Shown here: positions 50,401-58,587 of the stretch, piece after piece
Position numbering within the stretch: the stretch's first letter is position 1
Layout: the number at the start of each line of letters is the position of its first letter
Source of the DNA: Macrostomum lignano
Lineage: Eukaryota
Direction: 5' to 3'
DNA length: 64,000 nt
Assembly (NCBI GenBank): GCA_002269645.1
Contig: NIVC01001451.1
Coordinates: 190,994 to 254,993, forward strand
Notes under the pieces: generated by a model
What the model was told of the DNA's origin: nothing
The model's database searches: none
What the model saw: the letters and a program-made list of their open reading frames with translations, nothing else
Translations under genes and position numbers: made by a program

Positions 50401-53400
50401 ATCCACCACCGCGTCCACTATGCTCATGGGGTCGCGGTAGTCGATAGAGTTCTGAAATGGATGCGGACTACTACTACTACTACTACTACTACTACTACTA
50501 CTACTACTACTACTACTACTACTACTACTACTACTACTACTACTACTACTACTACTACTACTACTACTACTACTACTACTACTACTACTACTACTACTAC
50601 TACTACTACTACTACTACTACTACTACTACTACTACTACTACTACTACTACTACTACTACTACTACTACTACTACTACTACTACTACTACTACTACTACT
50701 ACTACTACTACTACTACTACTACTACTACTACTACTACTACTACTACTACTACTACTACTACTACTACTACTACTACTACTACTACTACTACTACTACTA
50801 CTACTACTACTACTACTACTACTACTACTACTACTACTACTACTACTACTACTACTACTACTACTACTACTACTACTACTACTACTACTACTACTACTAC
50901 TACTACTACTACTACTACTACTACTACTACTACTACTACTACTACTACTACTACTACTACTACTACTACTACTACTACTACTACTACTACTACTACTACT
51001 ACTACTACTACTACTACTACTACTACTACTACTACTACTACTACTACTACTACTACTACTACTACTACTACTACTACTACTACTACTACTACTACTACTA
51101 CTACTACTACTACTACTACTACTACTACTACTACTACTACTACTACTACTACTACTACTACTACTACTACTACTACTACTACTACTACTACTACTACTAC
51201 TACTACTACTACTACTACTACTACTACTACTACTACTACTACTACTACTACTACTACTACTACTACTACTACTACTACTACTACTACTACTACTACTACT
51301 ACTACTACTACTACTACTACTACTACTACTACTACTACTACTACTACTACTACTACTACTGTACCCCGAATCGGCTGATGCGGCGCTCATCTCCTAGTAA
51401 AAAGGCGGCACAGAAGGGTGTGTACACAGCTGTGTACAGGACTAGCAGCAGCACCAGCCAATCCCAGGCCGCTTTAAACGGAGAATAGTGCAGAATTATA
51501 GACTCGCATTGTCTAGAGCCGTTGCTATGCCGCTGACGATGCTGCTCGTGCTCGTGAGGATGAAGACGGTGGCCAGATCCCAGGGACAGCACGTGAGCCA
51601 CGGTCTCGGTCAGGCTTCTTCGGGTGCTGCTCTGAGCCAGACTGGCTGAGATGACGAGTGCGTCTGGGCTGGCTTTCCAGTGACCCGACTGCCTGTCTGA
51701 CGTGACGGCTTCTCCTGACGCTGATCAAAGGTGGGGTAGAAAAAAACTGAAGTTGATAGCTCGAATTTATGAGTTCCTTTCACGATTGTTAATTTTCGAG
51801 AAATTCAAGATTCTCAATGAACTGACGCTTCAGAAGATTTCTTGTGTTTAGAACCTAATGCTTCAGGCTTCAGAAGAGATGTTTCAGGCTCACAGCCTCA
51901 TCCTTCAGGCTTCAGAAGAGATGTTTCAGGCTCACAACCTCATGCTTCAGGCTTCAGAAGAGATGTTTCAGGCTCACAGCCTCATGCTTCAGGCTTCAGA
52001 AGAGATGTTTCAGGCTCACAGCCTCATGCTTCAGGCTTCAGAAAATATGTCTCTGGCTCACAGCCTCATGCTTCAGGCTTCAGAGGATGTCTCAGGCTCA
52101 CAAGCTCATACACTAGCAGAAGTCAATAAATCCATGTATTTACCATCAGCACTGGCCTCGTGAGCACTGGCCTGAGCTGCTGGCATTGTCTCCATCCCGG
52201 ACGCAGTGCCACCGACTTGTTTAGCGCTGGCACCAGCCTCCCCGCTGCACAAGGGCGGAAGTAAACGGCTGACCCACTGCCCCAGCGAGCTTGCGGCTGC
52301 AATTATTTAGCTTCATCGATTAAAAAATACCGTAAAAACCGCGAGCTTTAATTGCGCGTCAAAAACCCTAAAAAAGTACTTTAAAGTAGGAACTCCAACA
52401 GCCGATATTGCGCTCCTGAACTGAATTCGTCTGAGCAGCTCTCGGAGACCCCGCTCGTATAGTTCAATTGGGTCAATATTTCATCAAAAAATGGTTGATA
52501 TTTTGACAGCTTAATTGGTCCGACGCACTCAAACCGTCTAAATTGCTCTGGGCCATGCTATATGGCGCAATCATTCTTCTACTTGACTGCCAAATTTGGA
52601 CAGTGTGTTCAGTGGCACGCACCTCACACACACGCTCACACAGGGTGAACAGCGGCCCTGACTTTCTAAATCGTCAGGGGTGTACACTCTCTGCGCCTTG
52701 GGGGTTGGTCCTCATGGGTGTGGAATTGAACCAGGGGTCGTGGGTCGAGAGTCAGACACATTTAACACCTGTGCCCCCCTCCCCCCAAAGCACAGAGGAT
52801 GTACACTTGTGCTACTGTGCCCCCTCCCCCAAAGTATAGAGGATGTACACTTGAGCTTCTGTGCCCCCTCCCCCCAAAGCACAGAGGATGTACACTTGTG
52901 CTTATGTGCCCCTCCCCCCAAAGCACAGAGGATGTACACTTGTGCTTCTGTGCCCCCTCCCCCCAAAGCACAGAGGATGTACACTTGTGCTACTGTGCCC
53001 CCTCCCCCCAAATCACAGAGGATGTACACTTGTGCTACTGTGCCCCCTCCCCCCAAAGCACAGAGGATGTACACTTGTGCTACTGTGCCCCCTCCCCCCA
53101 AAGTATAGAGGATGTACACTTGTGCTACTGTGCCCCCTCCCCCCAAAGTATAGAGGATGTACACTTGTGCTACTGTGCCCCCTCCCCCCAAAGCACAGAG
53201 GATGTACACTTGTGCTACTGTGCCCCCTCCCCCCAAAGCACAGAGGATGTACACTTGTGCTACTGTGCCCCCTCCCCCAAAGCACAGAGGATGTACACTT
53301 GTGCTACTGTGCCCCCTCCCCCCAAAGCACAGAGGATGTACACTTGTGCTACTGTGCCCCCTCCCCCCAAAGCACAGAGGATGTACACTTGTGCTACTGT

Positions 53401-56400: not shown

Positions 56401-58587
56401 CTGTGCCCCCTCCCCCCAAAGCACAGAGGATGTACACTTGTGCTACTGTGCCCCCTCCCCCCAAAGCACAGAGGATGTACACTTGTGCTACTGTGCCCCC
56501 TCCCCCCAAAGTATAGAGGATGTACACTTGTGCTACTGTGCCCCCTCCCCCCAAAGCACAGAGGATGTACACTTGTGCTACTGTGCCCCCTCCCCCCAAA
56601 GTATAGAGGATGTACACTTGAGCTTCTGTGCCCCCTCCCCCCAAAGCACAGAGGATGTACACTTGTGCTTATGTGCCCCCTCCCCCCAAAGCACAGAGGA
56701 TGTACACTTGTGCTTCTGTGCCCCCTCCCCCAAAGCACAGAGGATGTACACTTGTGCTTCTGTGCCCCCTCCCCCCAAAGCACAGAGGATGTACACTTGT
56801 GCTACTGTGCCCCCTCCCCCCAAATCACAGAGGATGTACACTTGTGCTACTGTGCCCCCTCCCCCCAAAGCACAGAGGATGTACACTTGTGCTACTGTGC
56901 CCCCTCCCCCCAAAGTATAGAGGATGTACACTTGTGCTACTGTGCCCCCTCCCCCCAAAGTATAGAGGATGTACACTTGTGCTACTGTGCCCCTCCCCCC
57001 AAAGCACAGAGGATGTACACTTGTGCTACTGTGCCCCCTCCCCCCAAAGCACAGAGGATGTACACTTGTGCTACTGTGCCCCCTCCCCCCAAAGCACAGA
57101 GGATGTACACTTGTGCTACTGTGCCCCCTCCCCCCAAAGCACAGAGGATGTACACTTGTGCTACTGTGCCCCCTCCCCCCAAAGCACAGAGGATGTACAC
57201 TTGTGCTACTGTGCCCCCTCCCCCAAAGCACAGAGGATGTACACTTGTGCTACTGTGCCCCTCCCCCAAAGCACAGAGGATGTACACTTGTGCTACTGTG
57301 CCCCCTCCCCCCAAAGCACAGAGGATGTACACTTGTGCTACTGTGCCCCTCCCCCAAAGCACAGAGGATGTACACTTGTGCTACTGTGCCCCCTCCCCCT
57401 AAGTATAGAGGATGTACACTTGTGCTACTGTGCCCCCTCCCCCCAAAGCACAGAGGATGTACACTTGTGCTACTGTGCCCCTCCCCCAAAGCACAGAGGA
57501 TGTACACTTGTGCTACTGTGCCCCCTCCCCCCAAAGCACAGAGGATGTACACTTGTGCTACTGTGCCCCCTCCCCCCAAAGCACAGAGGATGTACACTTG
57601 TGCTACTGTGCCCCCTCCCCCCAAAGCACAGAGGATGTACACTTGTGCTTCTGTGCCCCCTCCCCCCAAAGCACAGAGGATGTACACTTGTGCTACTGTG
57701 CCCCCTCCCCCCAAAGCACAGAGGATGTACACTTGTGCTACTGTGCCCCTCCCCCCAAAGCACAGAGGATGTACACTTGTGCTACTGTGCCCCCTCCCCC
57801 CAAATGCAGTCGACCTACTTCTATTAGAACCAGCAATTAATATTTTCTCAACATCATAAGCACATGGTGTACTTGATATTTTTTGTGTCTTAAAACCTGG
57901 CGATTCTTTCACAAAATGCCTTGAGAATGACTCACGCTGATTGGACAGGACTGACTCTCTCTTTGAATCGTACCTATCCGTCGTGTGCTCATAGAAGCTG
58001 ACGATGAAGAAAGCCAATTCGCCGAGTTGGTCTCGAATAGGCGTGGCAACGCAGTCGCATTGGAATTCGCTGCCTAGAGAAGCAACAAATAAGAGAGATA
58101 ATATGGGGAGCAATTTGTGTGCCTCTGCAACTGATAGTTCGTGGTGACTATGTAAGGGAATAAATACTACGAGGCTTTTTGACGGTTACAGGTAGATTGA
58201 GACATGAGGACCTGATGAACCTAGCGGGTACTGCAGGGACTCAGAGAAAACCGGCTGTTACAATTGGCGGGGTTCCGATAATAACACAGCAGGCACAGGA
58301 CATGAGCTCAAAACTTTCCACCCTACCGTCTTTTCTGCGCAGCACAGAGTCCACCTGCGTCTCCTCCGCCGTTTCTGATTCCGCCGTTGTCGCGGCCAGC
58401 GCCGCGTCCATCGAGGCTGCAACTGCCGTCGCTTCCCTTGATGTCGCCGTGCTTGCCGAGCTCGGGCAAGCGACCGAAAGTCCAGTGAGTTGGCTGCGCG
58501 AGTAGCCGGTGAGACTGCGAAATGCGTCGCTACTGAAGATGATCGGCCGAGCCGACAGTCGAGCATTCACTACACAGAAGGCTCTGT
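44484..58587 (-). CDS. KCNH2-like: ERG-subfamily (KCNH2/6/7-like, seizure-like) voltage-gated K+ channel
   Basis: Exons 58587-58327, 58073-57936, 52296-52144, 51720-51365, 50451-50218, 49531-49307, 47816-47415, 46450-46275 and 44952-44484 join in frame through GT-AG introns. Features: PAS ([19 protein letters not shown]...RRKDG), [19 protein letters not shown]4 [14 protein letters not shown], pore [16 protein letters not shown]6 [11 protein letters not shown]-linker/CNBHD with FSL, and a terminal coiled coil. Confidence 0.95.
45000..45905. repeat. 15-bp minisatellite in the last KCNH intron
   Basis: Unit aaaaagatacccttt. Confidence 0.97.
46485..47390. repeat. 22-bp minisatellite in two blocks (46485-46705, 47190-47390) split by ~480 bp of other sequence
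   Basis: Unit g(a/g)gtatctcagtgtgtctctat. Confidence 0.9.
47860..49280. repeat. 20-22-bp minisatellite interrupted by a SINE
   Basis: Unit ctgtcactccacaatctctaat to the right of the SINE, and the ctgtcactccacactcttcaca variant to the left. Confidence 0.95.
47995..48360 (+). mobile_element. tRNA-derived SINE, 366 bp, full length
   Basis: Head ggggcgTAGCCCAGCGGtag (A box) and GGCTCGATTCC (B box). Ends in an A tail. Perfect 13-bp TSD aaccttcacagtc at 47982-47994 and 48361-48373. Confidence 0.9.
49545..50140. repeat. 18-19-bp minisatellite
   Basis: Unit catggg(g)atattcttggtt. Confidence 0.95.
50467..51360. repeat. Perfect (ACT)298 / (TAG)n microsatellite forming almost a whole intron
   Basis: 894 bp with no interruption seen. 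Confidence 0.98.
51857..52110. repeat. 42-bp minisatellite, ~6 copies
   Basis: Unit cttcaggcttcagaagagatgtttcaggctcacagcctcatg. Confidence 0.93.
52560..52779 (-). mobile_element. Second tRNA-derived SINE sharing a central domain with 47995-48360 (3' end uncertain)
   Basis: Minus strand reads gggggcacagg...GGTTCAATTCC (B box, 52732-52722), then ccaacccccaaggcgcagagagtgtacacccctgacgat...aaagtcagggccgctgttcaccctgtgtgag, which aligns with 48132-48214. Confidence 0.75.
52769..57803. repeat. 44-45-bp satellite, ~5 kb, ~110 copies
   Basis: Unit ctgtgccccctccccccaaagcacagaggatgtacacttgtgcta. Confidence 0.98.

Follow-up and report, generated by a model that had tools for sequence, protein, structure and literature searches.

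A short interspersed element of Macrostomum lignano and an adjoining 45-bp minisatellite with a probable chimeric unit of its head and inverted core

Introduction

Tandem arrays whose units come from part of a short interspersed element (SINE) have been described in squamate reptiles as SINE-derived satellites, or sSats (Vassetzky, Kosushkin and Ryskov, Mob DNA 2023; PMC10702118). At the edge of such an array, a terminal unit of greater length extends to a terminus of the SINE, and older amphibian examples of a SINE-satellite link were judged inconclusive by the same authors (PMC10702118). The stretch considered here, referred to as the window, comprises 64,000 nucleotides of Macrostomum lignano DNA (NCBI GenBank assembly GCA_002269645.1, contig NIVC01001451.1, positions 190,994 to 254,993 of the forward strand). 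It contains a 45-bp minisatellite beside a fragment of a transfer RNA (tRNA)-type SINE, designated SINE-B, and the array is interpreted, with a probability of roughly 0.55, as a SINE-derived minisatellite with a chimeric unit that arose through snap-back synthesis, slippage, an 8-bp duplication and unequal exchange.

Only a few lineages have so far yielded documented links between dispersed and tandem repeats. McGurk and Barbash, writing in Genome Research in 2018, are said to have traced satellites to seeds formed by transposable-element junctions or double insertions, and a 2015 review by Mestrovic et al. reportedly covers the links between transposable elements and satellites. Twin priming, which leaves inverted 5' ends in inserts mobilised by long interspersed elements (LINEs), was reportedly treated by Ostertag and Kazazian in 2001. 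The SVA elements of hominids are composite retrotransposons that are mobile and multi-copy and carry a SINE-R module, a poly(A) tail and target-site duplications.

The array and its SINE neighbours

The array, SINE-B and a full-length related element, SINE-A, occupy the following positions in the window.

52769..57804, no strand: 45-bp minisatellite, 112 units about 96% alike, with repeated multi-unit blocks
52629..52786, minus strand: SINE-B, tRNA-type SINE fragment, its 5' end (G6-A-G6-CACAG) overlapping the first partial array unit
52629..52717, minus strand: conserved central domain of the SINE, spanning 89 nt in this element and 82% identical to SINE-A 48128-48220 in 93 aligned columns
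52680..52704, minus strand: 25-nt core of SINE-B, CCCCCAAGGCGCAGAGAGTGTACAC, a 21/25 match to the array unit, inverted
52722..52732, minus strand: B box of SINE-B, GGTTCAATTCC, exact
52766..52776, minus strand: putative degenerate A box of SINE-B, GGGCACAGGTG, matching 6/9 specified positions
47995..48362, plus strand: SINE-A, full-length related SINE with a G10 5' end, A box TAGCCCAGCGG, B box GGCTCGATTCC, central domain and poly(A) tail

Tandem Repeats Finder (TRF) delimits the array at 52769-57804, with a period of 45, 112.4 copies, 96% matches and the consensus CTGTGCCCCCTCCCCCCAAAGCACAGAGGATGTACACTTGTGCTA. The original prediction had expected a monomer amplified about 110-fold, in agreement with this count; the start that it proposed, 52635, falls within the SINE, and the array proper runs from 52769. 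When the array is split into units, 60 of the 113 match the consensus exactly; there are 19 variants, which differ mainly by transitions and by the length of the C-run. The consensus contains no CpG. Motifs that span several units have four occurrences within the array, an offset of 56 units being one example, and this recurrence indicates that growth proceeded partly by block duplication. No gradient of SINE-likeness was found along the array units.

SINE-A is a textbook tRNA-type SINE in which 43 nt separate the starts of the A and B boxes, and it is bounded by 11-bp target-site duplications (CCTTCACAGTC) at 47984-47994 and 48363-48373. It is inserted inside a 22-bp satellite (47861-49275), and since the element and its target-site duplications lie within that satellite, the satellite is the older of the two. 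The satellite consensus differs across SINE-A, reading TCACTCCACACTCTTCACACTG on one side and TCTGTCACTCCACAATCTCTAA on the other. Beyond the central domain the sequences of SINE-A and SINE-B differ, and SINE-B is present as one copy in the 64-kb window. A central domain common to two otherwise different SINEs looks like the core of a SINE superfamily. As a text string, the SINE core had no match in the literature or in the MetaSINE paper, and the central domain was matched to none of the named domains (CORE, V, Deu, Ceph, Meta), the papers on which hold no sequences as text.

Homology between the unit and the SINE core

The plus strand of the unit, CCCCCAAAGCACAGAGGATGTACAC, agrees with the sense strand of the SINE-B core at 21 of 25 positions without gaps, and the two lie in opposite orientations at the locus, as the original prediction had proposed for the 25-mer. 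The four mismatched positions all differ by transitions, and one of these is CpG to CpA. Against dinucleotide shuffles of one or the other partner, p is 0.0005-0.001. Significance after correction for the C-run had been named beforehand as the test of this match, and it is retained: with the CCCCCTCCCCCC block fixed and the remainder shuffled, p is 0.0002 against SINE-B and 0.006 against SINE-A, and with the C-run dropped the remaining 20-mer matches at 16/20 positions, a level attained by 0/5000 shuffles.

The unit was also compared, in 2938 tests covering both strands, with all 80-bp segments of the window outside the array. The highest score, 30, belongs to the SINE-B core (mean of the tests 11.6, standard deviation 2.35), and the SINE-A core scores 25, tied for second place with a pure G-run match. 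Conversely, when the consensus units of 26 arrays in the window are compared with the SINEs, the 45-mer alone matches them (30 and 25; others at most 19). At sites that distinguish SINE-A from SINE-B, the unit sides with SINE-B, having AGAG instead of AGTG, a final CAC instead of CAT, and no extra base. From these comparisons, real homology of the core-like 25-mer, as opposed to a C-run artefact, appears well supported.

Searches in wider collections returned nothing comparable. A six-frame synthetic query of the unit had no match in the protein collection, and pattern scans for the unit or the SINE core had none in metagenome contigs, prokaryote genomes or viral contigs. A looser core pattern gave at least 120 metagenome matches and 2 genome matches, which lie in bacterial DNA without a surrounding SINE and were rejected as chance matches. 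A HMMER search with the antisense-frame translation of SINE-B against 1.84 billion proteins returned one match, P0241, likewise rejected as spurious and produced by summed repeats. It is encoded on an unrelated ENA contig with a 53-bp array at 1634-4132 that shows no nucleotide similarity, and the translation of that array matched the SINE-B antisense frame through RQGCxLxxPW repeated 15 times (E = 1e-22). This case is a warning that open reading frames derived from repeats inflate HMMER scores.

Anatomy of the 45-bp unit

On the minus strand the monomer reads GGGGGCACAGTAGCACAAGTG, as had been predicted, and it can be divided into GGGGGCACAG-TAGCACAA-GTGTACATCCTCTGTGCTTTGGGGG-GA. The first block equals the 5' end of SINE-B, GGGGG(G)CACAG, and the third is the reverse complement of the SINE core, GTGTACAyyCTCTGyGCyTTGGGGG. 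At one joint both SINE pieces carry GTGT (head ...CACAGGTGT; antisense core GGGGTGTACAC...), and at the other both carry a G-run (antisense core ...CCTTGGGGG; head GGGGGG...). Joints placed on microhomologies fit the prediction of a fold-back or template-switch origin. On the plus strand, a 37-nt segment, CTGTGCC...GTACAC, has ACAC on each side, at TTTAACAC/CTGTG and at the end of GTACAC.

The remaining block, TAGCACAA on the minus strand, looks like a mutated duplicate of the neighbouring GGGCACAG, as the 8 nt TTGTGCTA are identical to the adjacent CTGTGCCC at 5/8 positions, and a further two positions show C-to-T changes. All 45 nt would therefore be accounted for by the head, the inverted core and a single small duplication. 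The original prediction had regarded TAGCACAAGTG as A-box-like; this motif has no significant alignment to the SINE-A head, and it may be the mutated 8-bp duplicate of GGGCACAG instead. In the orientation of SINE-B, the best alignment of the unit scores 18 (p ~0.3) with nothing significant beyond CACAG, and the unit was rejected as a same-orientation copy of the SINE head beyond that motif.

The unit is a quasi-palindrome (CTGTGC/GCACAG, AGCACA/TGTGCT, TGTACA) that, as single-stranded DNA, folds better than its shuffles (z = -3.0), and such folding would favour slippage. Taken over its parts, the proposal of a fold-back chimera of head and core holds for the inverted core, the complement of the SINE 5' end and the microhomology joints, while the head half is drawn from one SINE-B copy; with that dependence on a single copy, the fold-back chimera would be the most economical reading of the unit.

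The boundary between SINE-B and the array

SINE-B directly adjoins the array on its left side, and no array sequence lies to the left of SINE-B. The junction on the minus strand reads ...CTTTGGGGGGAGGGGGGCACAG/GTGTTAAATGTGTCTGAC..., and 8 of the 11 nt of the A box GGGCACAGGTG fall inside the first array unit. This is the only A-box-like motif at tRNA spacing from the SINE-B B box, its start lying 44 nt before the B box start, which is the canonical distance, and the surrounding GCAC...GTGT could form a D-arm-like stem. Because the spacing is canonical only when the first 8 array nucleotides are counted as SINE, the array appears to start inside the SINE-B head. The 5' end of SINE-B may accordingly be read as G6-A-G6-CACAGGTGT..., extending to approximately 52786. 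The earlier proposal that the array starts exactly at the SINE 5' head is thus correct in that the array adjoins the SINE; the exact point has to be revised, the head overlapping the first partial unit from 52769 to approximately 52786.

The head alignment of SINE-A and SINE-B has a p value of approximately 0.01 without the G-run. A long G-run also stands at the 5' end of SINE-A, an independent element bounded by target-site duplications, and the C-run of the unit could therefore plausibly be complementary to the start of a SINE. The right flank of the array carries no SINE remnant, with alignment scores of 28-37 against shuffle means of 30-33, and was rejected as a decayed second SINE because the alignment is not significant.

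Origin of the array and alternative explanations

A SINE origin of the unit is regarded as well supported, and the steps that may have led to the array can be set out as follows. The complementary strand of the SINE would end in a C-run, the complement of the 5' G-run, and this C-rich 3' end could fold back onto GGGGG of its own core, 90 nt behind. This could take place while a LINE reverse transcriptase completes the insertion, or later, by template switching in replication or repair. Self-templated extension would then yield antisense head, C-run and sense core in succession, a product equal to the observed joint. Slippage between the ACAC direct repeats around the 37-nt segment might generate the first tandem copy, an 8-bp internal duplication would extend the unit to the 45-mer, and unequal exchange together with block duplication could raise the number to 112 units while homogeneity was maintained.

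Several observations weigh against this origin. None of the units near SINE-B is more SINE-like than the consensus, and the adjacent SINE-B need not be the parent, given that the unit differs from its core at 4/25 positions (16%), in an array that is itself 96% homogeneous. Either an old event was followed by homogenisation of the array or the adjacent SINE-B may not be the parent; if the array did originate at this locus, these four differences indicate that the event was not recent. SINE-B has no recognisable poly(A) tail or target-site duplication at the locus, and its 3' end is undefined. Neither Rfam nor ARAGORN with default settings calls a tRNA in SINE-A or SINE-B, and the fold that relaxed ARAGORN settings produce in the SINEs is unconvincing. 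The reading of the SINE-B 5' end is partly circular, as it draws on a single copy whose head is inseparable from the terminal array unit, and the 8-nt TAGCACAA demands an extra ad hoc step. Finally, correction for 26 arrays brings p to approximately 0.005, and the window is one of a genome-wide scan, which leaves some room for chance.

A different history, in which the unit is SINE-derived and the array comes from another SINE copy or another site, is unlikely, and it is the alternative that holds up best. By one route, a second, 5'-truncated SINE would have been inserted head-to-head and the junction amplified; by another, a dispersed 45-mer satellite would have been born elsewhere, with SINE-B landing at its edge or travelling with it as a composite element. 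The 4/25 differences from the adjacent core are compatible with such a history. SINEs do insert into arrays in this region, as SINE-A, with its target-site duplications, has done within the 22-bp satellite, and repeated insertion at the same locus has been proposed as a route to SINE-derived satellites in squamates (PMC10702118). A second complete SINE inserted head-to-head is nevertheless unsupported, because nothing resembling a SINE was detected at the right flank (scores of 28-37, shuffle means 30-33). Against either route, there is neither array sequence to the left of SINE-B nor a target-site duplication, the phase of the unit where array and SINE meet matches the 5' end expected for the SINE and re-establishes the spacing between A and B boxes, and the unit follows SINE-B, not SINE-A, where the two elements differ.

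It is also conceivable, at rather long odds, that the array is an unrelated minisatellite whose likeness to the SINE core is fortuitous, in a region that turns nearly every sequence into an array. Tandem repeats, in 32 arrays, make up 43% of the window; the match spans only 25 nt, G/C-run matches elsewhere score up to 25, and the finding was chosen after the fact from a large scan. Against this reading stands the specificity of the match, which gives p <=2e-4 with the C-run fixed and 0/5000 with it removed, makes the SINE cores the best and tied second-best of 2938 tests, and consists, where it fails, entirely of transitions. Moreover, it lies immediately beside the array, and the units of the other arrays lack SINE resemblance.

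Transcription and possible function

The weakest alternative, a functional locus in which the precursor messenger RNA (pre-mRNA) of the host potassium-channel gene carries 112 antisense copies of the SINE core that pair in cis or trans and feed a small interfering RNA (siRNA) or PIWI-interacting RNA (piRNA) pathway, is very improbable. In its favour, the host gene is on the minus strand and the array is intronic, so that antisense-core RNA would arise whenever the gene is transcribed, and the predicted fold of the minus-strand RNA pairs the array unit with the SINE-B core (z = -3.4), with three of the four mismatches expected to form G-U pairs. Against it, the duplex would span only 25 bp with a mismatch, the pairing is trivially implied by the sequence, and the many arrays of unrelated units that fill the same gene show that no selection is needed.

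A transcript of either strand that spans the array and SINE-B would hold inverted copies of the core, and production of double-stranded RNA (dsRNA) or small RNAs from the array is only a possibility. That the array has been kept as a source of such RNAs, or as a sponge, against an active SINE superfamily through more than 100 antisense core copies in the pre-mRNA is hardly to be expected; if true, it would represent a satellite recruited for transposon defence and born from its own target element. No function for the array is implied.

The plus strand of the array is C-rich, with a GC skew of approximately -0.22 to -0.29, and the G-rich minus strand is the sense strand of the potassium-channel gene. 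On that sense strand, GGGGGGAGGGGG occurs 112 times across 52769-57804. As a speculation, G-rich non-template array DNA might favour R-loops or G-quadruplexes during transcription and thereby add to the instability of the array.

Genomic setting

The window is animal DNA, and its 32 separate tandem arrays cover 57% of the 10-58 kb region. The arrays at 10000-58000 have units of 3-299 bp, almost all of them mutually unrelated, and fill the introns of two genes, one Gsx-like and one ERG-like, as well as the space between them. For a genic region, this density of minisatellites is exceptional. The genes and the transposase fragment recognised in the window are listed below.

minus strand: ERG-type (KCNH2/6/7-like) potassium-channel gene, with the exons given in the next five lines
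44484-44975, minus strand: ERG exon of the cyclic nucleotide monophosphate (cNMP)-binding domain
47382-47837, minus strand: ERG pore exon
50176-50460, minus strand: ERG S2-S3 exon
51356..51601, minus strand: open frame containing the ERG S1 exon, downstream of the array, with an S1 motif read by eye and no Pfam match
58241..58627, minus strand: open frame containing the ERG PAS-domain exon, upstream of the array in gene direction
33.2-37.1 kb, plus strand: Gsx-like homeobox gene
2880-3983: mariner-family transposase, split over two open frames

The ERG exons are approximately 81% identical to their vertebrate counterparts, and searches with these exons and with the mariner sequence returned no match from the same species. 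Since exons of the same channel gene lie on both sides, the array and SINE-B are intronic, between the PAS exon and the S1 exon. The same gene contains a pure (ACT)298 microsatellite (50467-51360, 894 bp, 100% matches) between the S1 and S2-S3 exons, and the uninterrupted state of this repeat suggests a very recent expansion or an assembly effect. On the plus strand, a 496-aa open frame (9923-11413) crosses a 42-bp array (10465-10995) in frame and encodes 14-aa repeats of the GAIGVSGSGTEDVA type; this could represent either a genuine exon with a coding minisatellite or an open frame that arose by chance. The division of the mariner transposase over two open frames indicates that it is decayed, and the closest relative among the collected proteins, 85% identical, is located on a 1.4-kb metagenome contig.

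Comparison with known systems

Like the SVA elements of hominids, the locus combines a GC-rich array of 35-50-bp units with antisense SINE fragments beside it. The mobility, multiple copies, SINE-R module, tail and target-site duplications of SVA are not seen here, and the hosts are unrelated. Twin priming, and snap-back synthesis by a reverse transcriptase, resemble the locus in that an inverted stretch meets the element at a microhomology. The products of twin priming have inverted and direct parts without overlap, and the poly(A) tail belongs to the direct part; at this locus, the flanking copy also contains the sequence of the inverted 25-mer, the array is followed on its right by neither a direct 3' segment nor a poly(A) tail, and no target-site duplication is seen. 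As in satellites seeded at transposable-element junctions, a junction formed from transposable-element sequence would have become a tandem unit and grown by unequal exchange, although those satellites are mostly head-to-tail dimers of whole elements, whereas the junction here is inverted and takes in approximately 40 nt of the element.

If the proposed origin were confirmed, a parent SINE and its daughter array would stand side by side, with a unit composed of two oppositely oriented SINE pieces, unlike the squamate sSats, and with both joints on microhomologies, which would point to a concrete mechanism of birth in which snap-back synthesis or template switching is followed by slippage. The locus would also illustrate how a genome prone to minisatellites can convert any short hairpin-forming sequence into kilobases of intronic DNA.

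The closest comparison remains that with the squamate sSats. In both, the tandem unit comes from part of a tRNA-related SINE, a terminal unit runs on into the SINE up to one of its ends (here apparently, and on the left side only, the 3' terminus of SINE-B being undefined), tens to approximately 1000 units are present per locus, and homogeneity rises with array length. The unit is significantly similar to a SINE of the same genome, the likeness expected of an sSat, through its 21/25 agreement with the SINE-B core. It differs from the squamate arrays in having a SINE on one side only, a short unit (45 bp), an intronic position and a single locus seen. Squamate units are regions of the SINE, which the present analysis reads as contiguous segments in the orientation of the flanking SINE; here, the unit would consist of the 5' end plus an inverted core, and the inverted 25-mer breaks that colinearity. 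Because part of the unit is inverted, the locus is best regarded, on this sequence comparison, as a variant of the SINE-derived satellites rather than as a plain member.

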